From: Adineta vaga
Taxonomy: Eukaryota > Animalia > Rotifera
DNA: 64,000 nucleotides
NCBI GenBank assembly: GCA_021613535.1
Contig: CP075492.1
Coordinates: 14,198,001-14,262,000 of the forward strand
Reading direction: 5' to 3'
The translations under genes were made by a program, and so were the position numbers. The notes under the pieces were generated by a model. The model worked only from the letters and a program-made list of their open reading frames with translations. It had not been told where the DNA came from and ran no database searches. Every line of letters starts with the position of its first letter. Position 1 is the first letter of the stretch. Shown here piece by piece: positions 19,883-63,475 of the stretch.

Positions 19883-21249
19883 ATGCTGCAACGAAAGAAT
19901 CGTTCTTGGACGACATCCAATGATGAAACCGATTCACAAAAACAATCTCTACTCCATAGATTTTTTCATCATCATCATCATATTAGCCCTCACATTTCAA
20001 CACTCTATTCCGCTTGTCAAAACAACGATTTAGTACAAGTTGAAGATTGTTTGAAAAATATGAAACCTATAGAAATTGATCATCAGTATGCACCGAGTAA
20101 TGAAACTGTTCTACATATGGCAACACGAAATCAATCTAAAGAAATGATCAAAACTCTTTTATCATACGGTATACAACGATCATTACGAAATATTCATGGT
20201 CAACAAGCTTATCATTTAGCGCAAAATAAAGAAATTGAAGATTTATTTCAACGTCCAAAATCATCACGTTTTACTTTTTTACATAAAACAAATAGCGTAT
20301 CGAATTTATCTGAATATAAAAATAAATGTAAAAGTTGTTCATTAATTAATGATAAGACATTTTATGAATGGGAATTAATCAATGAAAATGCTTCCCAAAT
20401 TGCTTTAAGATTTCGTCGCGAATTAAAACCATTAATTTTCATGAATGAAAATGATTTCAAACAAAAACTTTATTCTATTCATAAAGGTTATATTAAAACA
20501 CGTTTACAACATATATCGACAGCAGATCATGAACGTATCTCTAGTTATTTCAAACGTGCATTATATGAACATAAACCTTATTATATCATTACAGCTTATA
20601 CAATTTGTCAAAGTTTTACTGAATTATTAAATCAAGATTTAGCACGAAATGTTATTCATGATATTAAAAATGGATGTAGTAAATTTTCTTGTGATTGCCT
20701 TTATTCAACTGAAGATGGAACAAAATCGATAACAAATATCTTTTTTTATCATCCAAAATTTCGAGAACTTTCGTATAAAGGTGAAGTCTATCGTGGTATT
20801 GTCATAGAAAAACTAGTCTTCAACATTATAAAGTTGGGTCATGTATTATAACAACAACATTTCTTTCTGCATCAAAAAATTCACTTGTAGCACAAGCTTT
20901 TAGTGATAAAGGAACATCCGATTCATCAATGCATTCATTCTTTTGTATCTATGAAATATTCAGTGATGAACATACAGCTTTGGACATATCGACAATATCG
21001 GAATTTGAATTCGAAGATGAAGTTTTAATTTTACCGTATTCAGCATTTCTAATTACAAATATGGAAGAAGGAGAAGATATGACAAAGATCTATTTGAAAG
21101 AACAACGTTTAACACAATTATTTGATGAACATACAAAAACATTGAAATCATCGACACGTCTTTTAGAATGGATTGAAGCTGGCTTAAGTAAGTTAATCTT
21201 GTCTGATGATGAAAATATACGATCTCGATCAAAAACGATGCCAATGTGA
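19883..21249 (+). CDS. Ankyrin-repeat + R-S-E (ARTC-type) ADP-ribosyltransferase, 1-nt frameshift in the A-run 20808-20812
   Basis: LYSACQ and TVLHMA ankyrin repeats, AYT, VYRG. Adding one A gives LQHYKVGSCIITTTFLSASKN in frame with EFEFEDEVLILPYSAF. Confidence 0.82.
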
Positions 21250-21256
21250 AAGACAA

Positions 21257-22204
21257 TTATATTGCAGATGAAATTTGTGTAGTATTTGATACATCACTAT
21301 TCGTTCTTTTCCTTGATGTTTCACAAAAAACGATATTTGTTATTACGATAACGAATGATCGTCGAAATTCATTCATATAAACATTCGATGGATAAATATA
21401 AATTAAGAATGTCATTGTAAATGGAATGTTTGCTAAACTTATGAAAATAAAATACAAACGCAAAGTCGTACTTGAATCAATTCGTTCACATGAATAGATC
21501 ACATGTTTAAAAAGATACCATGGTAATATACAAATAATAAAACACAATGGTGGAAGAAAGAAATCTAAATGTTTTATCATTTGTTGTCTCCAAACAAGCC
21601 AATAATTTCTTTCGCCTAAATTGATATATACTTTATGTACACTGATTTGTTTCAGTACGAAATAACTTGACAGAATATGTAGACAACATGTTAATAGAAC
21701 AATACCAAATTCAATACTTTTAATGATTTTTCCTAAGTTCAAAATATTTGTCGAAGTCAAATTATGATTGTTGAAGAATAAAAGAATTGTTGGAATTTGA
21801 GTAAGTAAAGTAATAAAGAATAAGATGACGGAGAAGAGACAAGCAATCATACTTGAATATCACATTGCACAGAAATTGAAAATATTTAATGCAATAGCTG
21901 ATATAGAAAATAAATTTGTATGTTGAATCGATTGTGTATCAGATATAACAGATATTTCAAGAAATATACAACGTATGAGATTACATAATGAGAGAAGAAT
22001 AAGATATATACCGAGATTGGTTATACGAATCGATAGACGAAGACATGTTTGAATAGTTAAAAAATTATTGATAAGAGAAAATTCAATAATTAATTGAAAT
22101 AAAAGAATGAATATATATTCACTATTGGGTAAATACAGAGCTATACTATGATATCTTGATTGTTGCAAGATATCTGTACATGGAATGATTGTTGATGTAT
22201 TCAT
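21257..22204 (-). pseudogene. Divergent 7TM-like receptor with one in-frame TGA (21860-21862)
   Basis: ORFs 21860-22204 and 21257-21850 are in the same frame; multiple TM helices; C-terminal YIYPSNVYMNEF. Confidence 0.6.
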
Positions 22205-22970
22205 TTTAACTTAGATATGTTTATGAGAAAAGAATAATATTTGCACAGTACTATATTATATGTCAAGATTATAGAGTAGAAGAACCTGACGTATACTTCA
22301 TATCATGAATGACCTCATTTTATTTCTGCGTAAATATATATTGATTTGAATAGAAAAATGAGTAGGAGAATCAGAAAAAATAGAAACAGACCACGTGTTG
22401 ATTATTTCACTTATATTTACTTCATTCGATTATAATCTATATATAGTTGCAGATAATTTTGAGCTCTTTTCGTGTAGAATGTAATCAATGTGAGCAGGAC
22501 TATTGTAAATGCTTTGACGAGAAGAAACGTGATTTTTTATAATGATAAATACTTTTAATTCTGAGATCAGTCTGTACTTTGATGTATTTTTCTACTTTAA
22601 AAAGTAATATTCGTCTTTACCCTCACAAATGAACACATTGCTTAATGAAATAAAGTTGATGAAACCCTTTTATCGAATGAAACAAACAAAAATTTGATTC
22701 GACTTGATATTCTATTTTTATTTTAAAGATATTCACCGGGAAAATGAAAGTATAATAAAGGACTCTAATATAATTGAATATTTTGAACATGAACATTTTA
22801 TTATCACCAATAACCTAAAGGATTTTCTCTTGAAACTACAACCTACTGAAATTCTTATTAATGCACTTTTCATCCTAGCTTATAGATACAAAAATAACAG
22901 AACACGCTAATTACTTTTTTTTCTAATTATAAAAGATTCAGTACTGAATTCTATTTTTTCTTTATTCAAA

Positions 22971-23925
22971 ATGAATTCATCAACACCAGTACATCAAATA
23001 CCAAACATTATCATTGATTGTTCAATTATCACAGGCTCTTCAATTACTATTTGCGTTTCACTTGCAATATTTCAATTGATTTGCTATGATTTAATCAAAC
23101 AGAAAACTTCTTTAGATCGAGTTGCACTTCTTCTAACAGCAAATGTTTATTTATCATTATTCTTCTTCTCCGCATTAGTTCTTGAACAGTTTATACGTGC
23201 ATATCTAGGACATCGCTATTTGATGTATCATTAAGTGATGGAATCTATTGTCAATTTCGTTCTTATCTTCCATGGGTGTCCATTTGTGGAATCATGTACT
23301 CGAATACTTTGCAAGGAATCTATCGTTTATGTCGAATTGTTTTTCATACTAAACAAATGCTTCAATCATTTCACTTCTACATGAAAATGATCGTTATTCA
23401 ATGGATTCTATGTTTCACAATTCTCATTCCTTCATTTTTTCTTGATGGTTTTAAATATTCAGTGAATAATTATTATTGTGAAAATGATTATAGAAATATT
23501 CGAAGTACAGTTTTTAATGGTACTCTCTCTTCTACCATTCCGATAACTCTAGCGAGTATGTGTTAGTTTATACATGGAGAAAAATGCATCGAAGAGATAA
23601 TCATTTATTACAAACAATGACACGAATTCAAGAGATGAACGCACGACGTGATTTAGTTGTACTGTTTCGAATTTGTATTATTCATGGATTCTTATCCATA
23701 TTCTTTACACCTTCTTCAGTATTACTTTTCATTTATATTGGCACTGGGTATGAACCTTGGTGGTCACCACAATTTCAATGGTTATTTTTGTGTCTGTCAA
23801 CTACCTGTATTAGTGTTACACTATTATTTATATCACCTCATGTTCAAAATTTATTGAAAAAAAGATTTCATCGACGTCGTCATCAAACATCTGTACATAT
23901 TCATATGAGAGTTACTTGTCCGTAG
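22971..23925 (+). CDS. Orphan 7TM receptor with two frameshifts (~23220, ~23555)
   Basis: Three consecutive ORFs give TM1-7 (YCQFRSY, YRLCRIVF, SPHV). Error versus pseudogene is unresolved. Confidence 0.65.
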
Positions 23926-24265
23926 AGAATACTGAACTGATTATTTGTAATAATATATTCTCTCATTCACATTTTCAAGAGTATCAATTTTGTTGTGAAA
24001 TTAGAAAATGATGATAGACGAACAGTATGTTTATCACAGTGAGAAAAAAAAGTACTAAAATACCTAGTGATTACACAACAAACCTATTGGCTGATTTTTA
24101 TATACTATGAATTTGATGAATCGAGTAGATCGATAAGTTTTCTTTCTCTCATCTTTTGACTCGTACACTCGAAAGTGTTTACATACTGATGTCATATAGA
24201 TGAGAAAAACAAAAATAATTAGATGATAGTATTCATAATTATAGAAGCGTAAGTGATAGTTTGGA

Positions 24266-26414
24266 TTACCATTGATAAAATTGCTTGTTATTCTTCGTAT
24301 CATCACTATTACAACCTGATAACCATTTCGAAGGTTTCGTAATATTTACAAATCCAAGTTTGGCTGCTGGACTATTCCATTTCACTGTGAAAAAATTACA
24401 TTGATTTGTATCACCTGAAAACAATGGATCATCTATAATACTTCCATTGTCTTGACCTGTCTTTTGCCAATCAATAAATGATAGCTGTTGTGGACCGAAT
24501 AGTAATTTAGTACCATACGGATTGAAATAGATATTATTATTCAATACTGCTCTAACGTTTGGATCAGATTTATAAGCTGAATGATTTGTTCCTTGAAATG
24601 TATCATAAACAATATTACGTGTGTATGTCCATGATGTATGATTTTCTGCTAATTGAATACGAACATCACCATCGGGAAAAGGGTCACCTGGTTGTGATGG
24701 TTGAATCAGTGATGCACGAGCAAAAACATTATTTACAATCGTATTATTTGCACCATAATGTTGAAATAAAGAACTCCAACCTGTATTGTATACAACATTA
24801 TTTGAAACAAGTATATTTGATGCACCATCATCAAGATAAATTCCCCACATATATGTTGCATAACTATACACGTTTTTAATAACATTCCCATGGATAACTG
24901 TACCTGATTGAATACCGATCGTATAAATACCACCTTGATCACAAAGTATATGTTGACCAATTGTATAAATATAATTTTCTAAAATGAAAATTTTTGTTGT
25001 TAATGATTCCGTATAACCATTTTGTGAACCAACAGATATACCATTATATCGATGATGATGAATACTATTATCTGCAATAATGATATCATATGCACGAAAA
25101 ACTAATACTCCTACACCACTGGGAAAAACATTTCCTCCATAACTAATTTCATTGGAAATGATCTTATTTGAATTTGCTAATATTGATGCTGGTGTTAGCC
25201 AATCACCAATCCAAACACCACCAGCACCTGTATCATTGACTAATGAATTCATAAAAATAATATTCGATGTCCCTTCTCTTAATCGCAATCCATATGATCC
25301 TGTATGACTAATTTCAACATTAGATATAGTGATTGATGTTGCATTGGCAATAAAAAATGCAACCGATGTAAGAAATGAGGCTGATGCTGAATTGGCTTGT
25401 TCAGTACGACCGATATTCCATGCACCATGTTGTATAGCAATATTATCAATAATAATATCTCGAATGGGATCTGTTGTACAGTTGCTAGCTAAGGAAACAA
25501 CAATTTCTTGAACTGATGTAATGATTTGTGCTTGTGTTGGATCATAGGTACCATCTGTCATCAAGTAGATCGTTTTCGTTTCATTGACAAAACAGAATGA
25601 ATTTGGAATAAGTGCTTCACAAAGATTTTCAATATGAAATCGTCGTTGAGCTTGAGTTGGAAATTCGCCAATAGGATATTGAGAAGGATTAGTAAAGAAA
25701 ATAGTATTATTCGACGGTATGAGTCGATCAATATAATGATGGGATTCTGTCCAACTATGATAAATAACTACCATTGCATCTGTTAATGATGTATAATTGA
25801 ATTGTCCAGGTGCATATTGAAAACCATATCGTGATTGAATGGAATCATTTAAAGGTGCAACATATTGCAAATATTCGGAAAAATTAGTTGGAATACGTGT
25901 ACGAACAATTCGTTGATTATTTACGAATAATTGATTAACGAAGGATATTGATGAAGCAATTGCACTATAAATATTGCCGCTAACATGTATCCAACCAGTC
26001 ACAGGTACTCCACCACTAATCACTGCCGTCTTTGAACGTTGATAGGAACTTTTATGCCGCGATCGATCCATCAAACAAGGTAGTCTCTGCTTCATTCATT
26101 GTTGTTAAACGTATATGACTATGCGCTTGTGTGATGTGCGTAGTGTTAACAAAATGATAGGTTGGATATAAATGAATGGTTATTCTGATTGATGATATCA
26201 TATTATTACGATTATACCGATGTTCAATATGTTGAAGTGCTTGGTGTAATGATGAGTAAGGAAATGCAAGTGATCCATCACTATCTTTATTAAAATTTAG
26301 AAATGGAACAACGTACAAATCGTTCGATAAAGTCGATGAAAGAGCTGACGTTTGATATAATTCACTAATAATTAAAATTAATGTCACTAAAATTTGATCT
26401 TTCGTAATTTTCAT
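24266..26414 (-). CDS. Secreted right-handed beta-helix (pectin-lyase fold, GH141-like) protein, intronless, frameshift near 26055
   Basis: Signal peptide; DGSLAFPY, VISGG, QLFVN, DQGGIYT and WGIYLDDGASN motifs; many parallel beta-helix turns. Confidence 0.82.
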
Positions 26415-26732
26415 TGTATTTCAAAATTCTATAAAGATTCAAACGTTCTTTTTAAAATTTCTATTTACTAACAGCACACATGTTGTTCGAAGGTAAAGAT
26501 GCATACACTTATCTCTCTGTTATCTATACAAAGTTCTTTTTTTTGATCAAGTTGAAATCAGCAACATGCATCTTCTATTTACATCCAGCATTAGATAGTT
26601 TTTTTACTGTCTATGCATTAATTTTGAAATAAAATGAAATTTTAATAAGAGTCTATTGAATTTTGTATTAATTTGAAGAGAAAAATGATTAATTTAAGAA
26701 ATAATAAGAAAAAATTATCTTTTCTAAAGTTT

Positions 26733-27518
26733 CTAACACATCTTTGACATTTCACTTCGTCCACCACATCCATTGAGGAAGACTCACACCATAGGTACCT
26801 AGAAAAAAGGTTAATAGAATTCAAATAGAATCGAAATGGATAAAAGTTCTTACATTTTTTACATTCACCGCAATGCCATTCTCGCCAACCGACACATTCT
26901 TGACATACAATGCAATGCCATTTACAATTATCTTGTTCAAAATCTTCTCGACAGAATGAATAATAATAGCTCGAAAGCTTATTTGATAGAAGCATACGAA
27001 ATAATTTTTGCATATGATTGAGTTTTTCGTCATCGTCAATATCGTTCCATTCTTCCACCCATTCTCCAAGTTCATGATCAAATTCACAAGCATCTGAATA
27101 ACTAAAACGATACATATATTTGATTAGATTTCTTGATAAAGAATAGATTATATATTTACCAGGCGGCTTGCATGATACGTTCTCGTAATTGATTTCGATC
27201 TATTTGTTTCAATGCATCAGCATTTTTAACATTTTCCACAAGCCAACTGGAAAAACAAGGATGAGCTGAATATTTCTTTTCATTACCAAAGAAATATTCC
27301 AAATTATTGAACATATTTTGACAAGATGATTGACATCCACATGATGAATTACATCCACTACCAAATTTGAAACAAGCACAAGTTCGTTTGGTACATCCTT
27401 TGGAGCAATTACATTTATCTTTCTTTTCATAATTTGGATTTTTTTCCGTAATTTGACCACTTTTTGGACCTTGATTTTGTTGTTCATCGGCACTATCAGA
27501 ATAATCGTCGATCCACAT
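26733..27518 (-). CDS. Tesmin/CXC-domain + C-terminal Cys-rich zinc-finger protein, 3 exons (introns 27102-27159, 26799-26853)
   Basis: [33 protein letters not shown]; [22 protein letters not shown]|CTYG. An apparent 2-nt loss lies near 26775. Confidence 0.75.
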
Positions 27519-27815
27519 GGTTGATATTTTTCAAATAAACGAGACGATCGATCGATTTTACTATATCTTTTTCTTTCACGGCGGTCGACAAAGATCTTAC
27601 ATATGGTTATCATATATTAAACATGAAATTTTATAAGAAAAGAATAAATGTTTTCAAATTACATTATTAAAATAGAGAATTATTTAAAATAATGAATTTC
27701 TTTCGATTTTCCAAAAAAAAAGATGTCGCTGAAAAATGGTTTACTTTCCGCATTCTTTTATGTTTTATTGAAATCTAGTCAATGAAACGATATAATTCAA
27801 TTGAGAAAAATGTGT

Positions 27816-29164: not shown

Positions 29165-29655
29165 TAGTTTGCACCACACCCCTCAACTTTTTCGTTTGTT
29201 TCTATAAATGTAAACGAGACTATATTGTAGAATATTTCTTTATATTTTTCAATGTAAGAACAATTGTTTACGTCATCATTATGTAAAGTAGATATGATAT
29301 CATTTTTTCGAACAGAATTCGTCGACTAAACTTTAATCTATGAAAATACTTCATCATAAGTGTATATGCAATTTTTCTATCGGAGATATTTTTATACGAA
29401 TCAACAAATATGTTCCGTAATGACGCACAAAGATGAAAATATGATTAAAATCTTTTTCAAATATTATAATAATAAAATTGAACGACATTCATATGATAGA
29501 TGCCACAGTTTGATTAGCATGAAATTTTCCAAGTAATTGTTTTACAGTCAATCGTATTTCATTTGAGATGTACATACAGAGTTCAGATGATATGAAATAA
29601 ACGAAAACAATTGACTACTAATCGTTCGATCGCTGCTCGGAGATCACTTTTTTGC

Positions 29656-29743
29656 ATCCTGAGGGTGTGGGTGAAGGTGCGGATTGGGTTTGGGGTGAGG
29701 AGGACTAGCTAATCGTCTACACCCACACCCACACCCTCAAGAT
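29656..29743. repeat. Best-preserved hairpin element with 18-bp telomere-like terminal inverted repeats
   Basis: atcctgagggtgtgggtg (29656-29673) versus cacccacaccctcaagat (29726-29743), one mismatch. Confidence 0.8.
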
Positions 29744-29973
29744 CTATTTCAATCAGATCTCCTGTCTATCATTTCGGCGGTTTTATGGTACGAATTTACT
29801 GGTAGCAGAATAAACAAGATCATGATAGATTCAAATATAAATATTTATGAATAAAGATATAAAATATGAGTGATAGCACATGAATTTTACGAACGATATC
29901 AAGCAAGTGTCATTTAAACATCACACATGGCTACAACATTTTCTAATTTGTTACACTGTACTTTATTGACTTC

Positions 29974-32732: not shown

Positions 32733-33224
32733 ATGTCGAATCGTCAGAAGAGTGCTAAGCGTAACAAATCTACAATCGAATGTGGTTTTGGCGAAACGTG
32801 TGCTCGTCCAAATTGTACGTTCATTCATCCTGAAACTCGTAATCTTCAAGCAAATATAAAGACAATTGAGCAAAAGAAACACGAGAATATGATGCATCTT
32901 CAGACACGACAAATGGAAATGATTATGCAATTGTGCTCGAATTACAAAGCATGTTGTCGATTAGATTGTCCTTATAGACATCCTCCTCTTTGGAATCCTG
33001 TGAAAAATCAACAATTAGCTGAAGCTAAACGTCTTCAAAATGAAAAGCGCAGAGAACAAGAACAACAACATGCTTTAACGGTTTACCGTGATCAACATCA
33101 ATCGAGAAATATTTCACAATTAAATAATCGGCTTAACGATGATTATGACTATGATGAAGACTATTTTAATGTTCACGAAAAATTTTGGCAGAAACAAACT
33201 AAACGTCAGGTTGACCAATGGTAG
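32733..33224 (+). CDS. Small protein with two CCCH (Nab2-like) zinc fingers and a Gln-rich coiled coil
   Basis: CGFGETCARPNCTFIHP and CSNYKACCRLDCPYRHP. Confidence 0.8.
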   Translation: MSNRQKSAKRNKSTIECGFGETCARPNCTFIHPETRNLQANIKTIEQKKHENMMHLQTRQMEMIMQLCSNYKACCRLDCPYRHPPLWNPVKNQQLAEAKRLQNEKRREQEQQHALTVYRDQHQSRNISQLNNRLNDDYDYDEDYFNVHEKFWQKQTKRQVDQW

Positions 33225-33692: not shown

Positions 33693-34345
33693 TTAAATAA
33701 CAGAATCACGGTGGGCAGGTCTATGTCTGTGAGGATTGTTCAAATGATGTACTTGAGGACCATGTCGATGGTGACTTGGTTTCATCTTATGCATGCTCTA
33801 TAAAAGAAAAGAAAAGATAAAAATCAGATTCATTTCAATATATCTACCGAAGGTGTTAATAGTCTATGGCGATGACCGATAAGGGGTGTACGGTGATGTT
33901 GTCCATCAGAATTGGATAATTTTGCGGTCAGAACAAAACTATGAACGCCCATAGCAAATGTTAAACGTTCTTTACCACTGACTAATTGTGCTTTTAGTTT
34001 GTCGAATCTATTTTTATAAGTACGACTTCGTAGTAATTGTTCAAGAGAGGATGCATCACTAAATTTTTGTACAAGTTCCAAACACTCTGTAAGACATACC
34101 TCTAAATTCATCAATGGCTGATGAAAATTTTCATCATTTAAATGGTTTGGTGGAATGGATTCTAAACAACGAATAACTTCAAAAACATGTTCATCTAATT
34201 CATTACAATTCTTTTCATTTAATTCATAAGCAACGATTGTACTATGAATTTGTCTGCCCAAAAAGAGAATGGCTGAAACTAAAGGTGGACCAACACTTAA
34301 GGCCAGGCCAACGGAGATTGGTTCGCGATCATGACGTCTTTGCAT
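33693..34345 (-). CDS. Stand-alone MLKL N-terminal (four-helix bundle/HeLo-like) domain protein with a His-rich tail, 2 exons (intron 33798-33847), 200 aa
   Basis: The pattern NEKNCNELDEHV..LEVCLTECLELVQKFS...LLRSRTYKNRFDKLKAQL is typical of MLKL_NTD. A phase-0 GT-AG intron adds SMHKMKPSHHRHGPQVHHLNNPHRHRPAHRDSVI*. Confidence 0.75.
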
Positions 34346-39555: not shown

Positions 39556-40836
39556 ATGGCTTTAAGAAGTCATTTTTCTCCTTCCACAACAGAAAAATCG
39601 AACAATGTGAATCCATTCGAAATTTTGGGGGTGAATTCAAATGCATCACCGCAAGAAATCAGATATGCTTTCATGCGAGACATTCGTTCACATTCAAGAA
39701 ATCAACGAGCAAGAGTTGGTTTAGCATACGATATGATATGTTCAAAAGATCCGAGTAAATATACACGATATGGAGATATATTTGTTATTGTTCGAAAAGA
39801 TCATTTTTATTATGTAACGATCGGTGATTATAATTCCTTTGTAAGATTAATCACGAGACAGAAATCTCTTTTGAATGAACGAGACGAACATGGAAGAACA
39901 TTACTTTATATCGCATCTCGAAATGGTTTCCATAATATTTGTAATTTTTTACTGCAAGCCGGTTGTCAAATAAACGAAGTTCAACATTGTGGTAGTACAG
40001 CTTTACATGCTGCAGCATATTATGGACATCAATCTATTGTTGAACTTTTACTTGAATATGGTGCACATCCAAGTATTCGAAATCGATATGGAAACATGGC
40101 ACAAGAAGAAGCTGACATTCAAGAAGTCAAAAGTTGTATTTTATCACACACAGTTGACAAAATTAACACATTATTAAATGAATTGAAACAACAAAGCTAT
40201 GCAAAAAATATGGTTGTCTTGAAACATAATGGGAAACTTATTGGTAAAAAGATTCTACGAAATCCAAGATATCTATCAGGATATTCTTTAGAATATTTAA
40301 ATCAAAATTGGACATTAGCTTGGCATGGAACAAAATATCAATATTTATCATCAATCATGAAATATGGATTGCATCCAGCTGGTACTACTCTTTCACCTAA
40401 TCATCATGTATCGACTCAAGCTGGTCATATTGCATTGAATAAGAAAGTTGGAGCATTTGATAATTGGGCAAATGCTGTATTTATTTCACCAAGTATATTT
40501 TATGCAGCTGATATTGTTTATTCTGAACGGATATTTTCCGATAATCAACGATGGTGTGTAATTATCGAAACACGAGTGAAACCAGGTACATTTACTCGAC
40601 ATAAACAAACTTTATTAAATCAAAGATTGTTATTACCGGGTGAACCAGAAGAATTAGAATATCGTGTTGCTGTAAATGAAGATGATGATTTTATTCTTCG
40701 AGTCGAGTCAACTGAAAATATCATTGTAACAGCTTTGGTTTTTGTTAATTTAAATTTTCTCGAAAATATCAATGAATATTATCAAGGAGAAGATTTATTT
40801 GCTAATTCCGAAGCAGAAAGAACTCTTTTTCAATAA
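39556..40836 (+). CDS. J-like domain + ankyrin repeats + PARP-like (NEURL4-type) ADP-ribosyltransferase domain, intronless
   Basis: NPFEILGV..AS..EIR (DnaJ helices without HPD); GRTLLYIA and GSTALHAA ankyrins; AWHGT, FISPSIFYA, TRVKPG and ELEYR. Confidence 0.82.
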   Translation: MALRSHFSPSTTEKSNNVNPFEILGVNSNASPQEIRYAFMRDIRSHSRNQRARVGLAYDMICSKDPSKYTRYGDIFVIVRKDHFYYVTIGDYNSFVRLITRQKSLLNERDEHGRTLLYIASRNGFHNICNFLLQAGCQINEVQHCGSTALHAAAYYGHQSIVELLLEYGAHPSIRNRYGNMAQEEADIQEVKSCILSHTVDKINTLLNELKQQSYAKNMVVLKHNGKLIGKKILRNPRYLSGYSLEYLNQNWTLAWHGTKYQYLSSIMKYGLHPAGTTLSPNHHVSTQAGHIALNKKVGAFDNWANAVFISPSIFYAADIVYSERIFSDNQRWCVIIETRVKPGTFTRHKQTLLNQRLLLPGEPEELEYRVAVNEDDDFILRVESTENIIVTALVFVNLNFLENINEYYQGEDLFANSEAERTLFQ

Positions 40837-40986
40837 ATTTTCTTGTGAACTACTTGACTTACAATTATTTCGCCTCGTTATCTTTTTGCTACATGTATAT
40901 TACTCAGCATATTGACGTTCTTTTTTTTTCTTCTCATATTAAAAAGTGATACACATGTCAGTTATCTTCATCATAAGTTAAACAGA

Positions 40987-42033
40987 ATGAATCTTTTATT
41001 TTATAATATTATTCTATGTTTTTGTCTAACGACAATTTCAAGTACGATTAGTCCCTGTGCGAAATGGAATACAACAGGTATAACTGTTGCTGGAACAGGT
41101 GAACCAGGAAATTCAAGTTATGAGATTAATTCTGCGAAAGGACTTTTTATTCATAAACGAAGTAATTCATTGTATGTTGCGGATTTCTATAACAATCGTG
41201 TTCAAAAATATTCTCTTAACGATCCATCACATATGGGCACTACGGTCGCATTTGATATTGAAAATCCAATGAAAGTCTTCGTGGACGATGATAGTACGAA
41301 TGGACCAACTGTCTATGTAACACTTCGATTTTTAAATCGTACTGAAAAATGGATCACTGGTTCCATGCATGGAATTCAAATAAGTAATGATTGTCGATTG
41401 TGTTCAGGTGTTGCTGTTGATAAAGATAAAAATGTTTATATGTCAGAATCCGATCGACATCGTGTTGTACGTTGGTCATCTCGTACGAATACAACAACTG
41501 TTGTTGCTGGACAAACAAATACAAGTGGATCGACAAGTACATTACTTGATCATCCACAAGGTATCTATGTAAATCAAAATGGAACTATTGTTTATGTTGC
41601 TGATATGTGGAATAGTCGTATTCAGAAATTTCTACAAGGTTCATCGGAAGCAACAACAGTAGCTGGATCAAGTCAAGGTACTGCAGGTCATGATCCGCAA
41701 ACATTAAATTATCCAAATGATGTTTTTATCGATGAAGAAACAAATGTTGTTTATGTAATTGATACATCAAATAATAGAGTTCAACGTTGGAAATCTTTTG
41801 CAAGTGAAGGAGAAACGCTTGTTGGTGATATGGGTATGTTATAGTGTTAGAGAGAGTAGAACGATGTTAATCTTTTTGTATGTCTAATAGGTGTTGGTAA
41901 TGCAACTAATCAATTAAATAAACCATCAGATTTATCATTTGATCTACAAGGAAATCTTTTTGTAATGGACATGGAAAATAATCGTGTGCAAAAGTTTGAA
42001 TTGATTGATAATCGACCTTGTATAATAACGTAA
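40987..42033 (+). CDS. Secreted NHL-repeat beta-propeller protein, 2 exons (intron 41834-41890)
   Basis: Signal peptide, WNTTGITVAG, and repeated LYVAD..NNRVQK units. Confidence 0.9.
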
Positions 42034-47529: not shown

Positions 47530-47582
47530 CATATGATTTTATTCTAATATCTATAAACTGTTTATATCCAATAAGAAAAGTC

Positions 47583-51981: not shown

Positions 51982-53247
51982 ATGTTTAAACTTCCATCAC
52001 CTCATGAAAAAGTACTTCCACATCAAATTCATATCATTCGACCTCAGACAAAACCACAGAATTCTTTTCACTTTGATCGAATAGCTGGTTCACTCGTAGG
52101 TTTAGCAGTTGGTGATGCTCTCGGAGCGAGTGTAGAATTTCGATCTCATCAATATCTACTTGCTCATCCTCTTCGTGATATGAAAGCTGGTGGAACATGG
52201 GATTTACAAGCAGGTCAATGGACAGATGATACTTCAATGGCTTTATGCCTTGCAGCATCACTTATTAGTAAACGAGTTTTTAATCCTTATGATCAAATGG
52301 TTCGTTATAAATGGTGGTATAAATACGGTTATTTATCATCGACAGGTGAATGTTTTGATATTGGTAATGGAACTCGTAAAGCATTAGAAGAATTCTATCG
52401 ACGTCAGCTTCAATTAAAAAAGAAACTTCGTTTAAAAGATGATTTAGAAGTTGATCAAGTTTCTCGACAGATTATTGATAATGTACAATTTAATGTCAAT
52501 TGTAGTGGACAAGGAGCATGTGGAAATGGAGCATTAATGCGTCTTGCACCTGTAGCTCTCTTTTTCTATCGTGTTCCTTATGTTGCTGTTGAATTATCGG
52601 GACGCAGCGCTCGTTTAACTCATGGTGATGAAGTTGCCGTAGATGCATGTCGTTATTATGCTGCCTTAATTGTTGCAGCTATTACAGGTGAATCAAAAGA
52701 AAATCTTCTTCATGAACGTTTCTATGATTCACATAAAAGTTGGTTCGGTCGCAAACCTCTTCATCAAGATATTCTTCGTGTAGCTGCTGGATCATTTAAA
52801 CGACCAGGTGGTTATAAAGATGGAATTCGTGGTGCAGGATATGTTGTTCCATCATTAGAAGCAGCTTTATGGGCATTTTGGAAAGGAAAATCTTTTGAAG
52901 ATGGTGTATTGAATGCTATTCATTTAGGTGATGATACTGACACAACAGCTGCTATCTATGGTCAACTAGGAGGTGCTTATTATGGTTATCAAAGTATTCC
53001 ATATAATTGGATACATAAACTTTATGCTAATTCGTTGATTGTTTGCGTGGCTGAATGGTTACAAGCATTGAGTTATCGAAGAACGAAAGTATGTAGTCAT
53101 AAAAGACTCAGACATACTACTATTCGTCCATCGAGAAAGATAAAACAACAAACTGGTTGTATGGATGAGACTACACAAAGTACAATACTACAAACCGTAG
53201 ACGACATATATCGACGAGATATTGGTGCTAAATCAGTGGCAAAGTAG
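51982..53247 (+). CDS. ADP-ribosylglycohydrolase (DraG/ARH family)
   Basis: GDALG, WTDDT, GNGALMR, TH and GDDTDTTAAI metal-binding motifs. The ATG is preceded by an acceptor-like tttaatttag, so a 5' exon is possible. Confidence 0.92.
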   Translation: MFKLPSPHEKVLPHQIHIIRPQTKPQNSFHFDRIAGSLVGLAVGDALGASVEFRSHQYLLAHPLRDMKAGGTWDLQAGQWTDDTSMALCLAASLISKRVFNPYDQMVRYKWWYKYGYLSSTGECFDIGNGTRKALEEFYRRQLQLKKKLRLKDDLEVDQVSRQIIDNVQFNVNCSGQGACGNGALMRLAPVALFFYRVPYVAVELSGRSARLTHGDEVAVDACRYYAALIVAAITGESKENLLHERFYDSHKSWFGRKPLHQDILRVAAGSFKRPGGYKDGIRGAGYVVPSLEAALWAFWKGKSFEDGVLNAIHLGDDTDTTAAIYGQLGGAYYGYQSIPYNWIHKLYANSLIVCVAEWLQALSYRRTKVCSHKRLRHTTIRPSRKIKQQTGCMDETTQSTILQTVDDIYRRDIGAKSVAK

Positions 53248-56833: not shown

Positions 56834-56898
56834 AATCGAACATATTATATTGCAAAAATCTTTTGAATATTAAAAACAAAAAGCAATTTTTCATTTAG

Positions 56899-58062
56899 TT
56901 ATAGTTTCGATCGAATGCGATGATTATTCATCACCAACAGATTATTTTTTCTAATATCTGCAATTGTTTCACATCCACATAACATCATTGCTAAACGAAA
57001 TTCTTTTTTTAAGATATTCAATACATTTTTCACTCCTTGTTCGCCATCAACTGCTAAACCCCACAATATTGGTCTTCCAATTAGTACTGCTTTTGCACCT
57101 AATGCGATTGCTTTTAATATATCTGTTCCTCGACGTATACCACCATCGACATAAACATCAAGATGAGAATGATGACCTAAAGCATTGATAATATCCGATA
57201 GAGCATCCATAGTATTAACACTTGTATCTAATTGTCGTCCGCCATGATTTGATACGATTATTGCTTGAACACCATATTTAACAGCTTGACAAGCATCATC
57301 GGGATGTAAAATACCTTTGAGAATAATTGGTAATGAAGTGATCGATCTTATCCAATCTAAATCTTTCCATGATAAGGAAGTATCACGTGGTAATTCTTGA
57401 TATTTCTTTGTTGATTCGTCTTGTTCATCAATCAAGTTTTCTGCTCGTATACCATCGGGTAGAGAAAATTTATTGTGAACACTTGATTCTCGATTACCTA
57501 TGACACATGTATCAACAGTGAGAACTAATGCTTTATAACCTGACCTTTCTGCTCGTTCAATTAACTTTTGGGTAATCTGTCGGTCTTTGAATACGTAAAG
57601 TTGATACCAAAGTTGTGAATGACTTTGAGGAAAATATTCTCGAATTTGACGTCGATGTTCATCAGCTATAAGTTCCATACGTATTGATGAAATCGTACTC
57701 ACACACATAATTGTTGAACAAGCAACAGCAGCTCGAACAGTAGCTAATTCTCCATGTTCATTATGTGCTAAACGATGTAGAGCAGTAGGAGCAATGATAC
57801 ATGGGAATGATAGTGTTGCTGTCGAATTTAAAATCTGAGTTTCAGAACTGATGGAATCAGTTGTTGTATGTTTTGAAACATCGATCAATACTTTTGGACG
57901 TAATTGTATACGACGAAATGCTTTTTGATTATCAGTTAATGTTAGTTGATCATCGGAACCAGTATAATAATAATCGTAAGCCATTTGTGATAATTTTTCT
58001 TTGGCTCGTTGATGATAATCTTCAATATTCAATAGAGCACGAGCTATTTTTGTTTGATTCAT
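56899..58062 (-). CDS. FMN-dependent (S)-2-hydroxy-acid oxidase (glycolate oxidase/HAO-like), PTS1 -SKL, intronless
   Basis: WYQLY, LTVD, LKGI, VSNHGGRQLD, DGGIRRGTD; ends RSKL. Confidence 0.93.
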   Translation of the reverse strand: MNQTKIARALLNIEDYHQRAKEKLSQMAYDYYYTGSDDQLTLTDNQKAFRRIQLRPKVLIDVSKHTTTDSISSETQILNSTATLSFPCIIAPTALHRLAHNEHGELATVRAAVACSTIMCVSTISSIRMELIADEHRRQIREYFPQSHSQLWYQLYVFKDRQITQKLIERAERSGYKALVLTVDTCVIGNRESSVHNKFSLPDGIRAENLIDEQDESTKKYQELPRDTSLSWKDLDWIRSITSLPIILKGILHPDDACQAVKYGVQAIIVSNHGGRQLDTSVNTMDALSDIINALGHHSHLDVYVDGGIRRGTDILKAIALGAKAVLIGRPILWGLAVDGEQGVKNVLNILKKEFRLAMMLCGCETIADIRKNNLLVMNNHRIRSKL

Positions 58063-58644
58063 TCTCGAAAATGAATATCGTTGTTTTTTTCAATATAAGA
58101 AAGAAAATACTCGTCGTCAATTATATTTTACTTCGGATTCTTTTATGATGTTTATCAATGATACCATGTGCGCGCGTGATACCTGCTATCCTACATTCAT
58201 ACTTTTTTTTCTCGTAATTCGATCACTCTTATCATTTGTAACTCGCACACAAACATATTGCATTTTTCTCTATGATATTTCACTATTCGGAACTTAATTT
58301 ATAAATATCTTCTATCGAACTCTTTTTCTTATCTTATTTCAATCAATAATCGTTGACTTGAATCATTGAATGACAAAAGCTACTATCATATATGATTTTC
58401 CGAATATTCCATTCATCTGAAACACCTGTGAACACTCGAGTACTCTTAAAACAACTCTTGTTTATGCCAATAGAAATTAATCGTCTTCATTATCAATTTC
58501 ATTAAACTATAACTCTTTTGGTAGTTTGATTAATTTATTAAATTGTAATGTGACAAAATTGAGTGTTATAACTTTTTCACATTGTCAATATATGATTATC
58601 TTTGAGTATTAAATAAAACTAATCGCTCAATGGATTATTTTTAC

Positions 58645-59718
58645 TTAATCATCGTCATCGTCATCATCATCACTGTCATCGTCGTCGTGTTGGTCGTTCA
58701 CTTTTTCACATTCTATCAGGTCAATTTTGACATACTGTGGACCAAGTTGTTCTATTGATCTGATTACAAATGCTGTATAAGGTCCAACAAGAACTTCTTT
58801 CTCCATTGAATATTCCGAAAGTCGTTCAATATCAAGTCCTGTTCGATTGTTAATAATTTCGTAGCTGCATATTGCCGATAGTTTACAATGTTCACCATGG
58901 ACAGTTTGACGGTCAGTTTTATTCTTCGTTGCGAATTCTGCAGCGACTTCTGGCACCTTCGTTGTCGACATAAATGCTTTATTCATGACTTTTCCTCCTA
59001 TTCCGTACTGTTTTAAATCATCTTGCGTGATACACATACCACGGTAAACTTTTCCTATGTATGAAAGATTTTCGAATGCTGGGTTATTATAGAAAAAATC
59101 TATGAAATACGTAATGCCATAATTAGTTCCTTGATCGAAATGTTTCGTTGCAAGATCTTTGTTTAGTTTCTTATAGAAATCTGACTCAACAGTGTAGGCT
59201 TTTAACAGATAAATGGGATCTCCTGTCTGCTCGGCATCAGCAAGAAACTTTCCAATACGTTCAACATCTGTATGAGACATTTCTTCTCTAATAAATTTAA
59301 TCCGATGATTAATATGTTGACTCTTCCAACCAAGTCCTGCATGGCGAAATCGATAGTTTCTCGCCACTTCTTCTGCTGCATCATCACATTTCATCCAGTC
59401 AATATGACCAGAGTCACCGGTAGAAAATCTGCTTTCTGATTGTCGAAGGAACAGTTCTTTAATGTCTTGCTTTCCTGCTTCGTCAAATGGAAGACATTTA
59501 TATTTGTTTTCTACCGAACGACTGGCACCTCGATCTAATAACAATTTGACGATTTTTTTGTGACCATAATAACTAGCGACATGAAGAGCAGTTGATTTAT
59601 TAACATGATATGCATCAATTTCTTCTAACGACATTTTAGGCAATAAATCTTGAACTTCATCTACTTTTCCTGCGCGACACAACTCATAAAGCGTGCTGGT
59701 TGCCGATGAAGAAGCCAT
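58645..59718 (-). CDS. Ankyrin-repeat + R-S-E ADP-ribosyltransferase with an acidic tail (5'UTR intron 59723-59790)
   Basis: STALHVASYYGH ankyrin; KAYT, VYRG, FMSTTK and SMEKEVL; poly-Asp C-terminus. Confidence 0.9.
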   Translation of the reverse strand: MASSSATSTLYELCRAGKVDEVQDLLPKMSLEEIDAYHVNKSTALHVASYYGHKKIVKLLLDRGASRSVENKYKCLPFDEAGKQDIKELFLRQSESRFSTGDSGHIDWMKCDDAAEEVARNYRFRHAGLGWKSQHINHRIKFIREEMSHTDVERIGKFLADAEQTGDPIYLLKAYTVESDFYKKLNKDLATKHFDQGTNYGITYFIDFFYNNPAFENLSYIGKVYRGMCITQDDLKQYGIGGKVMNKAFMSTTKVPEVAAEFATKNKTDRQTVHGEHCKLSAICSYEIINNRTGLDIERLSEYSMEKEVLVGPYTAFVIRSIEQLGPQYVKIDLIECEKVNDQHDDDDSDDDDDDDD

Positions 59719-59930
59719 AGATCTATTTAAAGGAATATATTGCAAAAATTCTCTTCTATAAACATTTCTGACTGAATGAAAAACACTTACCAGTATACTT
59801 GTTATATATCACAAATATTAGTACCTCAAATATATTTGAAATCAATGTAAAAATCTAAAAAAAAAAGAAGTGCATTTATCCTTGACATCAAATAAAAGTG
59901 TGAAAGAATAAAATAAAAAAACGTTTTTCA

Positions 59931-62900
59931 TTAACCAGATTGTAACTTATCATCAATTTTCTGGATGAGTTTAGTCAATGCAGTATTGAAGTTATTCTCT
60001 GTAAATTCAAATGGTATATTTCCTCCAATGAGATGGTCTAACCAGCCTTTGACTTTATATTTGTTTTCGACTATTAGTGGTATAATCGGAGAATTGTGAT
60101 TGAAAGCATATTCAACTTCTGCCATGCAAAATTTTGATGAACGATAAGCAGCTGACATACAGACAAGCATTACACATTTCTTATCGATTGCTTTTTGCAT
60201 AAGTTCTAAACGATGTTTTCCGTCTGTTTCTGTATAGATTCGATAATTTTTTCCCTTAAGACGTTTATACATTCGAAGACAAATGCGCCTATCACTTGGA
60301 TTATTACAATAACTCATTACCAGGTCTAAGGGAACTGACTCATCCCATTGATCATTTGTAGTAATGTGTTCGTCATTAAAATCAGCATCTGTTTCTCCTT
60401 CTCTTTCTTTTTTATCATGTTCTGAACGAAAGGATCTTTCATCACCCATTTTCCACATGATACCACTTGCGATTGTTCTTAGATTTTTTGATGGATCATT
60501 CAACAAGTATAAGATATAATCAATGAACAAGTCAATTTTTTTCAGTTCCTTGCTCATGATTGGTCCGTGTATTGAACTGAGTAACTTCCAAATAATATCT
60601 AATGTTAATCGTCGAATTTTTCTCAGGATCGAGACATTTGGCTTGTCAGGACAACTAACAGATATACATTTCGCTATTGAAGACATTGCTTTTTCTTCTA
60701 CAGCCATGTATCTTTCAATCAAATTATTTTCAATCAGAACTAAATGAATTGAGTTAATATTGTATTTGAAACTATTCTTTTCAAAAATATACCTTGTAGA
60801 TGTTGTAATATGCCGTGAAGTTTTATGCCTTCGTATGCTTGTCTCGGATCTCTTGATGAGTTGGTCATATATTCAACGTATGTTCTAGATAGCTCAAGAG
60901 GTTGAGGTAAATTATCAATACGTTTTGAATCAAATTTTGCCACTAATGTTTGTGAAACGAATTTGATTATTTTATCGTTATCTGATTGAAATCTTGTGCA
61001 AACATTTAAAAGATTTCTATTTTTTATTACAGAAAACATTTGTTTATCAAATACTAAATTGTATATTAATATTAATGATTGTCCTACAATATTTGTCATA
61101 ACATCAATGACATGTCCATTTGTATCTGTCAATGTTTTATTTTGCAAAACGTGTAAAATATGATCGAGTATTGGGGCTGATAAAAACTCTTTTCGCATCG
61201 ATGGAGTTAATGCTACATAATTCAATAGTTTTATATGATAAGTCATTGCTTCAATTCAAGTATGCTTCATATCTTCAGTATCATTTTCATCTAAAACAAG
61301 ACGTATAAACGAGTCTTAGTGGATATTCATCTTACCATCATTGTTGAAAACAGCTGGTAGATGTTGAGTAAAAATGATCTGAGCTTTATCGATGATTTTC
61401 TTGTTCATCAACAAAGTATTGAATTCTTTTTGTCGCTTGTAACCATGTTGAATAAGAAATTCGGGACATTCTCGCATGAAAAACATTTGTTTTAAAGCAA
61501 GAGTGCGGTTTTTTTGTACCATACCAGACACAGCTCTTGCTTGACTAAGATCAATGTTTTTGTAGGCATCCATATAATTATTTGAAATTATACATAAAAG
61601 AACGGGATCTAACAACGATTCTACTACATTCGTTTCATATTTCGTACAATTATGAAGACGTCGCGAAACTTCTTTGTATTTGGATACATTTGATGGATAT
61701 TGATAGATAGATAAATGTACAATATCTTTGTATAATTTATCTAAATATGCTTCGGTTAAAGGACTAAGTTTTACATCAATTCTTTTTTCTAAATATGATC
61801 CAACAAGAATGAAAACTATATATATTTGATTAAGATTAACATACTCTCTATATTTTTGATAGGACCCACTGTTGTTTTCTCTTTTGATTCGAAAATCATT
61901 TCATTGATAAACTTTTTAAAAGCCTTCTTCAGTTTACCAGGTTCATGCTTCTTACTAATGACTTCTTGCGTTAAAATCTCCATCAACATTTTAGATGCAA
62001 AATGAATTGTATAGTCTTTCTCGGATACCATTTGCGAACAGATATCTGCGAGATCGTCTTTTTTCAACATATTAAATATATTTTGCTCATACGCCAAATT
62101 CATTAAAATCATCATACTAAATCCAACAATTCGAACGTTTGGGTCAAATAAATACTCAGTGTATGATGTCTTGATAGTCAGATTTTGTCGTAAGATTATC
62201 AGTAACTGTGTGACAATAGAACTTTGCATAGTTAATTTTCTGAAAGAAGGTGTCAGTGATAAGTTGTATAGGAAATAACAATGAGAACTTGAAAGATATG
62301 CTTCTAATAGAGCACTGTCATACATATCCCATGTGGGTTCTACGCCTTAAATTAAACCAATAAGACATGGTTATGAAAAACTGAAAAATATTCTCACCAC
62401 GTGTTGCAGTATATTTATCAAAAATAGATTTACTAGCCGCTATCAGGGATTTTGATAATAACGCAGCAACTTGATTGTCTTGTAGGAACTTATGTCGAAC
62501 AATATATTGTGGACATATTTCAGTAAAGAAAATTTGTTTTGGTGTGAGTCGTATTTGATCGGGTTCCATTGTTTCGAATACTTGCCGATAATATTTTGAG
62601 CTTAAACATTTTACAACAGAATTGAGTAACATATCAACAATATTCAGTTTAGAGCAGAGAAGAACCAGACGATTAATGACTTTGTATTTAACGTGATATG
62701 AAGGATATTCGTTTCTTGATAGATCATCAAGAGCATGAACTAAAGTTTGAAGAAATGAGTCCGTTAAAAAGATAACGTGATACTGCACTGAAATAATTCT
62801 TGTTTCATCGTTTTCCGATAGGGAAAGATTAACATTGGTATCATTAGATGTCGAAATGGTTTGATATCGAAATTTTCGAGATTTCGGTAGCTCAGTTATA

Positions 62901-63475
62901 GTCATTTTTTTTTGTTCGGTTGGACGTGCCTTTGGAGCGTTTGGAGGTAGACGCGCTGTCTTAACATTTAGTTTTTCTGTAAGTTGCTTGATCATCCTGT
63001 TATTTTCATGCAAATTCACAACTTTAGTATTTACTTTTTCCGTCACCGGAACTACTTCTGTAGGCACGTCTCCATAGATCAAACCTCCCGATTCATTTTG
63101 ATATAAACATAGCTGTGTTACCAAATAACTTATTGAATTGAAACAGTCTTCTTCTTGTTTAGTCATTGTTACTGTTCGAGAATGATTCGATTTGATCAAT
63201 AACAATTCTAATGTTTGACTAATATAATCGAAAATTGGATGGTTTCTAAGAATTAGATGATCAAATAGTTTACGCATCTTCAACGTAGCTAAATCGTCAC
63301 AAAAAGTTGTGAGAAAACTCAATCCATCGTTTTTTTTCTTTTGTGAAGATGCTTTGTCCAAATAAGAAATAATATCGTCGAACAAATGTTTCATATCTTC
63401 AATTCTGAACATACGTCGTTTTTGACGAAGTCGACGGACAATAATCCCGTATCGCAATGACAAGTTCTCCATCAT
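59931..63475 (-). CDS. Large multi-exon helical/ARM-like repeat protein with a C-terminal TIR domain (5' end uncertain)
   Basis: TIR motifs DLVMSY, LVCMS..YRSSKFCMAEVEYA and IIPLIV..GWL. ORFs 62318-63490, 61816-62325, 61316-61615, 60740-61246 and 59931-60722 are separated by short GT-AG gaps. Confidence 0.8.

Follow-up and report, generated by a model that had tools for sequence, protein, structure and literature searches.

A candidate TIR/ankyrin-ADP-ribosyltransferase gene module in bdelloid rotifers, at the edge of a mostly chance gathering of NAD+-related genes on Adineta vaga chromosome 3

Introduction

Catalytic TIR domains and ADP-ribosyltransferases (ARTs) are central to the immunity of bacteria and plants; among animals, SARM1 is, to our knowledge, the sole well-understood TIR enzyme. 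SARM1 is an ARM-SAM-TIR NADase, whereas bacterial TIR signalling (Thoeris ThsB and its effector) and the plant TIR pathways place a catalytic TIR beside a second protein linked to NAD+ or ADP-ribose, which in the bacterial TIR systems is a SIR2, Macro or TM effector. ADP-ribosylation of arginine is paired with an eraser of the ARH family in Tre1-Tri1 and DraT-DraG. Members of these families are found in the stretch of DNA analysed here, a window of 64,000 nucleotides from chromosome 3 of Adineta vaga (14.198-14.262 Mb), where six genes spread over 44 kb had been read from the sequence as a single NAD+-consuming defence toolkit.

All six of the domain calls in that original prediction hold, with caveats. 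NAD+/ADP-ribose enzymes with the expected motifs are indeed present, one of them (the ankyrin-ART at 19883) being broken by a frameshift. Of the three writers proposed, the one at 39556 is PARP-like by fold only. The arrangement itself is another matter: the span is probably not one system, and is better described as a conserved module at its right edge, an ARH and an Ank-PARP-like gene that sit in a housekeeping block, and scattered MLKL_N and frameshifted Ank-ART genes.

The TIR and Ankyrin-ART Genes at the Right Edge of the Window

The Ank-ART gene (58645..59854, minus strand) was delimited by Pfam matches to Ank and ART and by spliced cDNA-type contigs. Both domains lie in the open reading frame 58645-59745(-), with PF01129 scoring 26.8 bits against a cut-off of 22.3, and the coding sequence (58645-59718) specifies two to three ankyrin repeats, an ART domain of the R-S-ExE type and an acidic tail. 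The spliced contigs define an intron of 68 nt (59723-59790, GT..AG) in the 5'UTR, preceded by a 5' exon that runs from 59791 to at least 59854. The YRG, S and E-x-E motifs claimed for this ART are present as YRG, STT and EKE, with R226, S251, E306 and E308 invariant in nine Ank-ART relatives. R, S-x-T and E-x-E are common to the ARTC family (vertebrate ecto-ARTs and bacterial C2/C3-type R-S-ExE toxins; PF01129/PF03496), which is represented in A. vaga by at least 150 loci, and arginine specificity is expected from the E-x-E. Unlike the ecto-ARTs, the protein carries N-terminal ankyrin repeats and the acidic tail, and reading of its sequence by eye revealed neither a secretion signal nor a GPI anchor; the N-terminus, MASSSATSTLYE, is without a hydrophobic leader, the C-terminus is poly-Asp, and the enzyme is presumably cytosolic. 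The gene is single copy in the A. vaga genome, and its orthologues in Adineta, Rotaria and Didymodactylos are 58-69% identical.

Gene H (59931..63475, minus strand), delimited by Pfam, contig joints and colinear orthologues, comprises five exons, the contig joints placing its introns at 60740-60792, about 61292-61337, 61789-61844 and 62345-62396. Its product of ~1,100 aa consists of alpha-helical repeats followed by a C-terminal TIR_2 domain (59931-60722(-); 49.9 bits against a Pfam cut-off of 28). As had been predicted for the TIR at this position, its CMAEV motif presents a Glu at the catalytic position, where MyD88 has Q; four orthologues keep this Glu, and the C1 fusion paralogue has Ile in its place. 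Long helical repeats ahead of a Glu-bearing TIR of the TIR_2 type recall SARM1, and a SARM1-like logic of sensor plus NADase may apply. Unlike in SARM1, SAM domains were not detected in gene H by Pfam or by searches with the helical part, which returned generic HEAT/ARM-like leads and no specific ARM family match, and gene H is accompanied by an adjacent or fused R-S-E ART, which SARM1 is without. In E. coli, TIR domains from rotifers produce cADPR and deplete NAD+, an activity that depends on the Glu (bioRxiv 10.64898/2026.04.20.719644), and it is the analogy with these other rotifer TIRs that suggests an NADase or cyclase activity for that of gene H.

Two further TIR genes adjoin this pair. 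Gene U has its 3' end within the window (63601..64000, minus strand) and extends to about 4.1 kb past the window's end; it was recognized by its orthologues and by a TIR_2 match beyond the window (L006 1073-1498(-)) in which the catalytic Glu is absent. Gene P (L006 5681-8708, plus strand) lies just outside the window, head-to-head with U, and its TIR_2 match (L006 7809-8708(+)) has the Glu. With H and Ank-ART following on the strand of U, gene order and orthology indicate that the four genes constitute a bdelloid module.

The H/Ank-ART adjacency was compared in A. steineri, A. ricciae, Rotaria sp. Silwood2 and R. socialis, the Didymodactylos contig being too short. In each of the four species the two genes stand in tandem on the same strand, 44-291 bp apart, and the gene immediately upstream of Ank-ART is colinear with all exons of gene H. 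A. vaga shares the order U-H-Ank-ART with A. steineri, A. ricciae and R. socialis, where U is both orthologous and colinear, and the downstream flanks of the pair all differ (FMN dehydrogenase, SAM synthetase, 7tm receptor, DAG kinase, ubiquitin). Chromosome 3 of A. vaga holds, at 4.25 and 4.86 Mb, two old paralogous copies of the module, P/U/H(/ART), that retain order and orientation at 27-38% identity, and chromosome 6 carries an H and Ank-ART pair of which both genes have decayed. In addition, TIR_2, Ank and ART are fused into single proteins in A. vaga (1038 aa), A. steineri and Didymodactylos. The helical-repeat TIR and its neighbouring Ank-ART were therefore rightly, if unknowingly, grouped together, given the tandems in four other bdelloids, the two paralogous modules and the fusions. 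Since the block is inherited as such and its TIR-Ank-ART paralogues are fused, the module genes most likely act together on NAD+.

The ARH Gene and the Question of an Eraser

The DraG/ARH call at 51982..53247 (plus strand) is borne out by a nearly full-length match to PF03747 (252 bits, profile positions 1-285 of 287). The protein is of bacterial type; its closest solved structures are those of Thermus 2cwc (6e-58) and Serratia Tri1 6dre (7e-53), with which the metal-binding motifs WTDDTS and GDDTDT align. It is not part of the conserved TIR/Ank-ART module: no ARH or MLKL gene lies within 10 kb of the H/Ank-ART pair in the four other species examined. Within A. vaga, two of the three module copies, here and at 4.243-4.249 Mb of chromosome 3, have an ARH gene less than 10 kb away, against 0.6-0.8 expected (P 0.13-0.20), which may hint at a loose tie.

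It is unlikely that this ARH serves the module Ank-ART as a functional, trans-acting eraser in the manner of Tre1-Tri1 or DraT-DraG, though unlinked elsewhere. Its kinship with bacterial Arg-ADP-ribose hydrolases, Tri1 among them, and its position near two of three module copies would suit such a role, as would three immediate ART-ARH tandems elsewhere in the genome that resemble Tre1-Tri1 and DraT-DraG (0.3-0.5 expected, P 0.004-0.02, with the best 150 of 418 ART candidates). The tandems, however, may be duplicates of one ancestral pair. Unlike in the bacterial systems, two unrelated genes separate the ARH from the ART in the window, and neither A. ricciae, A. steineri nor Rotaria keeps them adjacent; in a genome that holds 35 ARH loci and at least 150 for ART, proximity of 5 kb is insufficient to infer pairing.

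Transcription of the H/Ank-ART Pair

H and Ank-ART are both transcribed and spliced, as judged from cDNA-type contigs; none of these contigs spans both genes, and the depths of their contigs differ. Short intergenic gaps are normal in the A. vaga genome. The adjacency could in principle reflect shared transcription, whether operon-like or from a shared promoter, or simple inertia, in either case without biochemical coupling. At most 77 nt separate the H stop codon from the start of the Ank-ART 5' exon, which is directly preceded by a polypyrimidine-AG acceptor-like site, and spliced-leader trans-splicing is in use in bdelloids (PMC3795323). Such an explanation is nonetheless distinctly improbable, since the repeated fusion of TIR, Ank and ART in Adineta and Didymodactylos is hard to explain without joint function; it is also at odds with an order kept through duplications so diverged, and with the decay of both genes in the chromosome 6 copy.

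The Other Genes of the Span

The Ank and PARP-like gene at 39556..40836 (plus strand), here termed gene c, encodes 426 aa and was defined by its Pfam Ank match, a fold match and orthologues, being conserved in bdelloids at 72-83% identity. The "J-like" part attributed to it found no Pfam support and lacks an HPD motif. As for the PARP-like part, the fold match is modest and the Pfam threshold is not reached: the C-terminal domain scores 15.2 bits against a cut-off of 26.7, was missed by the genome-wide PF00644 scan, and belongs to a family in which 15 of 17 members give weak PF00644 matches. All of the top 50 Foldseek matches of the modelled structure (pLDDT 70.6) are PARP catalytic domains, including PARP10 (E 1e-4, TM ~0.4), and residues H43, Y102/Y108 and E154 of the domain are conserved across the 17 sequences compared. 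The fold suggests a divergent PARP-like ART of the H-Y-E type. The domain would resemble the PARP10-like mono-ARTs (H-Y-E/I clade) in fold and in its conserved H, Y and probably E, and differs from them in its sub-threshold Pfam score and modest structural match; its N-terminal J-like and Ank architecture is confined to bdelloids. Gene c is not linked to the TIR/Ank-ART module.

The MLKL-like four-helix bundle predicted at 33693..34345 (minus strand) was recovered as MLKL_N above the Pfam cut-off (PF22215, 33830-34345(-), 39.7 bits against 27). It is one of 11 such loci in the genome and is absent from the syntenic region of A. ricciae. The MLKL_N match is shared with the MLKL/HeLo-like executioners, but unlike MLKL the gene is small and stand-alone, without a kinase-like domain or conserved linkage.

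The second Ank-ART gene (19883..21249, plus strand), recognized by Pfam and by intact homologues, has its Ank repeats in the open reading frame 19883-20851 and the C-terminal half of its ART (PF01129, 27.2 bits) in another frame, 20809-21249. Because the two pieces abut without a gap relative to intact homologues, the frameshift is placed in the A-run at 20808-20812; either the gene is a pseudogene or the assembly is in error at this homopolymer. The Ank repeats and the predicted motifs (YRG, SAS, EDE) are there, split by the frameshift, and it is the intact reading frame that fails. The gene is of a different subfamily, 27-37% identical to that at 58645.

Genome Counts and Synteny of the 44-kb Span

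All of these families are expanded in A. vaga: at least 150 ART loci (418 candidates) accompany about 90 TIR, 58 PARP and 35 ARH loci, and the 11 of MLKL_N. The ART statistics are lower bounds because the best 150 of the 418 candidates were used. With this set, permutations revealed no co-occurrence of family pairs above chance at 64 kb genome-wide. Places with at least three of the five families number 6 against 4.5 expected when megabase-scale density is kept (P 0.29), and the window's own megabase holds 12 family loci where the genome averages about 3.4. The enrichment anticipated by the original prediction was accordingly not found beyond regional density. ARH, TIR and MLKL occur together within 64 kb only here in the genome, with 0.04-0.09 such places expected (P 0.04-0.09) for families chosen post hoc.

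At least 12 unrelated genes are interspersed among the six, including Mpv17, beta-helix, stanniocalcin, GPCR, Na/H exchanger, CRAL-TRIO, UNC-93, abhydrolase, M28 and FMN dehydrogenase genes, among others. In A. ricciae, gene c is followed by NaH, CRAL_TRIO, UNC93, abhydrolase, ARH, M28, FMN_dh and then unrelated genes; of the proposed set this block holds ARH and gene c only, with neither the TIR/Ank-ART pair nor an MLKL gene. ARH and the Ank-PARP-like gene are hence part of an ordinary block of housekeeping genes that is syntenic within Adineta. The MLKL_N gene and the frameshifted Ank-ART represent very large families and lie scattered in a chromosome region dense with such genes. A defence-island-like cluster of 44 kb was considered and rejected, there being no excess over regional density and no conserved linkage.

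A single NAD+-consuming immune circuit of all six genes, in which selection holds writers, eraser, TIR NADase and MLKL-like pore-former together, is very doubtful: all six domains and most of their catalytic motifs are present, the ARH, TIR and MLKL combination is unique and desiccation-induced A. vaga genes are enriched for 'ADP-ribosylation' (PMC10809525), but one writer is frameshifted and the pair counts, the regional density, the intervening genes, the A. ricciae block and the four-species comparison all speak against it.

What stands of the proposal is the helical-repeat TIR and Ank-ART as one unit, and not the 44-kb set as a single circuit. The prediction's own caveat, that expanded families may cluster by chance, accounts better for most of the span, which is mostly a chance gathering in a family-rich chromosome region. 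At a density of at least 150 ART and about 90 TIR loci per 100 Mb, chance alone should bring members of different families together within tens of kilobases.

Discussion

For the module, a route of joint action can be proposed. Activated through its repeat region, the gene H product would cleave NAD+ or make a cADPR-type product; the ankyrin repeats would anchor the ART either to the TIR assembly or to the ART's target, an arginine of which would then be mono-ADP-ribosylated.

More tentatively, P/U/H/Ank-ART may be an animal counterpart of the prokaryotic TIR defence operons, with the TIR providing a signal or NAD+ use and the ART acting as effector. A trigger would cause the helical-repeat TIR to make a cADPR-type signal or to consume NAD+ locally, Glu-less TIR proteins would scaffold the assembly, and the ankyrin-ART would be the effector arm, Arg-ADP-ribosylating a host or pathogen target; the family would have diversified across Bdelloidea via duplication, fusion and fission. 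As in Thoeris and the plant pathways, a catalytic TIR stands beside a second NAD+/ADP-ribose-linked protein, and the gene order is kept as in a prokaryotic defence operon. Unlike those pathways, the bdelloid module has an animal host, introns and separate mRNAs, and its partner is an ankyrin-ART.

In bdelloids, a system should be claimed only where gene order is conserved or genes are fused. The TIR/ART block, whose order has survived ancient duplications and is shared between genera, and whose genes have been fused repeatedly, would be a tractable place from which to learn how animals may use NAD+ in immune or stress signalling and how gene linkage of the prokaryotic kind can persist in a eukaryote.

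Domain Content of the Predicted Genes

A 44-kb NAD+-consuming "toolkit" had been predicted here, composed of three ART writers, an ARH, a TIR protein and an MLKL-like effector. The domains of all six genes are real, and five of the six calls were confirmed directly by Pfam. The window spans 14,198,001-14,262,000 of chromosome 3 in the A. vaga genome (100.8 Mb in six contigs, 31% GC). The ankyrin-ART gene at 58645-59745 on the reverse strand (hereafter Ank-ART) exceeded the PF01129 cut-off of 22.3 bits with a score of 26.8, the ARH at 51982-53247 on the forward strand matched PF03747 with 252 bits, the TIR_2 domain at 59931-60722 (reverse) of the helical-repeat TIR gene (gene H; 59931-63475) scored 49.9 bits, and an MLKL_N domain was located at 33830-34345 (reverse; 39.7 bits). 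Ankyrin repeats were recognized by Pfam in both the 19883 and the 39556 genes of the forward strand. The motifs were found as originally described: a Glu occupies the catalytic position of the gene H TIR, and the R, S and E-x-E motifs of Ank-ART are invariant across nine relatives. With its di-metal motifs intact, the ARH is nearest to bacterial proteins (Thermus 2cwc, 6e-58; Serratia Tri1, 7e-53), the match to animal ARH3 being far weaker (1e-15).

The 39556 gene (gene c; 39556-40836, forward) had been read as a J-like/ankyrin/PARP-like protein. Its ankyrin repeats stand, the J-like N-terminus was unsupported by Pfam, and the C-terminal domain fell below the Pfam PARP cut-off; three lines of evidence nonetheless point to a PARP-like fold. 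PF00644 was matched weakly by 15 of 17 members of the family, language-model features led to PARP clusters, and the best 50 Foldseek matches of an AlphaFold model (pLDDT 70.6) were exclusively PARP catalytic domains, with PARP10 at an E-value of 1e-4 and a TM-score of about 0.4. The domain has a conserved H and Y and a probable E; searched alone against PDB sequences, it returned no match. In Rotaria socialis, the gene for a bona fide PARP-domain protein of 1565 aa is found at a distance of 8.6 kb from the gene c orthologue (L017 11459-12811). In the window, gene c is followed after 76 bp by a secreted-looking NHL-repeat gene of like orientation (40912-41844, forward).

The ART of the 19883 gene, which belongs to another subfamily, proved genuine, but the gene is broken: the C-terminal half of the ART (20809-21246; PF01129, 27.2 bits) lies in a different frame from the ankyrin part. 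The two pieces, queried separately with the frame unrepaired, meet without a gap against intact homologs, which places a frameshift in the run of A residues at 20808-20812. The gene is either a pseudogene or the product of a homopolymer assembly error.

Two other genes of the window are of note. A small CCCH zinc-finger gene (32733-33224, forward) adjoins MLKL_N and resembles the ZAP-like CCCH finger profile PF22628 weakly, below threshold (E 3.4e-4). The product of the gene at 24266-26095 (reverse) is a NosD-like right-handed beta-helix protein of 609 aa (PF13229), a type commoner in bacteria, and hence the gene was possibly acquired horizontally.

Clustering and Synteny of the 44-kb Span

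Genome-wide six-frame HMM scans identified about 35 ARH, 90 TIR_2 and 58 PARP loci, 11 MLKL_N loci, and at least 145-150 R-S-E ART (PF01129) loci. For the last family, scoring covered the best 150 of 418 first-look candidates, a set that does not include the ARTs of the window itself; all 150 were significant in 100.8 Mb and 48 are on chromosome 3. The R-S-E ART family is hugely expanded in A. vaga, and no paper describing this expansion was found.

At least twelve unrelated genes are interspersed among the six, including those for Mpv17, the beta-helix protein, stanniocalcin, a GPCR, the CCCH finger, an Na/H exchanger, CRAL-TRIO, UNC-93, an abhydrolase, an M28-like peptidase and an FMN dehydrogenase. 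The significance of the clustering was assessed against two null models, uniform placement and a jitter of each locus by 0.15-1 Mb that preserves regional density. With ART represented by the best 150 of 418 candidates, no pair of families co-occurred within 64 kb above chance; ARH and TIR, for example, were observed together three times against an expectation of 3.6-3.9. The ARH, TIR and MLKL triple occurs in this window alone genome-wide, against an expectation of 0.04-0.09 for families that were picked post hoc. Six sites carry at least three of the five families (ARH, TIR, ART, PARP and MLKL_N); the uniform null gives an expectation of 2.1 (P 0.015), and the null that preserves regional density one of 4.5 (P 0.29). 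Twelve family loci fall in the megabase containing the window, which is among the densest, the mean being about 3.4. On these counts, co-localization of the families did not exceed regional density.

The only short-range signal to stand out was an immediate ART-ARH tandem, observed three times against 0.3-0.5 expected (P 0.004-0.02; ART again being the best 150 of 418). In these tandems (C3:13370141-13372233, L012; C1:12543132-12545030, L013; C4:9022371-9024300, L014), the ARH follows the ART by about 400-500 bp on the same strand. None of the three is in this window, and all may descend by duplication from a single ancestral pair. On chromosome 1, a CRAL-TRIO paralog (C1:12901866-12903497) directly adjoins another MLKL_N locus, which echoes the presence of both families in the window but is probably a coincidence.

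Synteny led to the same view of the wider span. A block of the A. ricciae genome is colinear with 39.5-58 kb of the window, with common genes 74-86% identical in the order gene c, Na/H exchanger, CRAL-TRIO, UNC-93, abhydrolase, ARH, M28 and FMN dehydrogenase. Past the FMN dehydrogenase, a condensation-domain gene and FAF1 take the place of Ank-ART and the TIR gene, and no MLKL_N was found near the block. Given this colinearity without Ank-ART, TIR or MLKL_N, both the ARH and the PARP-like gene count as ordinary constituents of a synteny block of Adineta. The neighbors of gene c in R. socialis are different again. No colinear ohnologous region was found within the A. vaga genome, where FMN dehydrogenase paralogs are on chromosomes 1 and 4 and those of CRAL-TRIO on chromosomes 6, 2 and 5. 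The 44-kb set is largely a chance juxtaposition within a family-rich region and an ordinary synteny block, and for most of the span chance clustering, the caveat attached to the original prediction, is the preferred reading.

A Conserved TIR/ART Module

The right-hand 5.4 kb of the window, together with about 7 kb past its end, represents one copy of a TIR/ART module conserved in bdelloids. A. vaga has a single copy of Ank-ART, the next best paralog being 43% identical, and orthologs of Ank-ART share 58-69% identity. In A. steineri, Rotaria sp. Silwood2, A. ricciae and R. socialis, a gene H ortholog is found 44-291 bp upstream of Ank-ART on the same strand, with every exon colinear; adjacency was compared in these four species, the Didymodactylos contig reaching just some 350 bp beyond the start of Ank-ART. 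The downstream flank is distinct in every species (FMN dehydrogenase, SAM synthetase, 7tm receptor, DAG kinase or ubiquitin). The tandem of gene c and the NHL-repeat gene serves as a control: it is absent from A. ricciae, in which gene c is followed by a Methyltransf_7 gene, and this shows that close tandems are not generally conserved.

Upstream of gene H, a second TIR gene (gene U; 3' end at 63601-64000, reverse) likewise has colinear orthologs in A. steineri, A. ricciae and R. socialis. In A. vaga, the TIR of gene U is without the Glu, and the gene is arranged head-to-head with a further TIR gene located just past the window end, gene P, whose TIR has it. Chromosome 3 carries paralogous copies with the same order and orientation, P/U/H(/ART), at two further sites (4.25 and 4.86 Mb); their identity is only 27-38%, and hence the duplications are old. 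A decayed pair of H and Ank-ART in the same order was recognized on chromosome 6 (C6:701438-702931; L007 2442-3929, reverse), with several stop codons in both genes. On chromosome 1, a paralog (C1:13699580-13702800; L005 2069-5308, reverse) combines the helical region, TIR and ankyrin repeats in a single ORF, after which comes an intact ART exon. This 1038-aa fusion is UJR17609.1, in which the TIR catalytic Glu is replaced by Ile and the ART retains R, STS and E-E-E. Single proteins that unite TIR_2, ankyrin and ART domains were recovered by an exhaustive search from A. vaga (the 1038-aa fusion) as well as from A. steineri and Didymodactylos carnosus.

No description of the module was found in the literature searched. 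Papers on A. vaga desiccation/radiation, spaceflight and fungal infection mention at most ADP-ribosylation or PARPs, and not the pairing of TIR and ART.

Transcripts of Gene H and Ank-ART

Public runs provided spliced cDNA-type contigs that diverge from the reference by about 1%. They resolve gene H into five exons and show that Ank-ART is transcribed as a separate mRNA with a 68-nt intron in its 5'UTR. The 5' exon of Ank-ART starts no later than 59854, 77 nt past the gene H stop codon, and its cDNA contig terminates immediately after a T-rich tract and AG at 59855-59870 (reverse). This polypyrimidine-AG site may be a spliced-leader or a cis acceptor; leader sequence was absent from the Ank-ART contig. 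A fusion transcript of H and Ank-ART in the window was rejected, as the Ank-ART mRNA has its own 5' exon and none of the cDNA-type contigs bridges the two genes. The exons of gene H were queried singly; an atlas search with exon 1 returned generic alpha-solenoid leads only, and for the last exon AlphaFold gave an unusable model (pLDDT 42).

Proposed Pathway

The conserved gene order, its persistence through old duplications and the repeated fusion argue that the catalytic TIR protein and Ank-ART probably share one pathway. The E-x-E motif of R-S-E ARTs typically goes with arginine specificity, and arginine-specific mono-ADP-ribosylation is predicted for Ank-ART. Other rotifer TIR domains produce cADPR and deplete NAD+ in a Glu-dependent manner (bioRxiv 10.64898/2026.04.20.719644). 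Within such a pathway, the ankyrin repeats would tether the ART to the TIR assembly or to its target.
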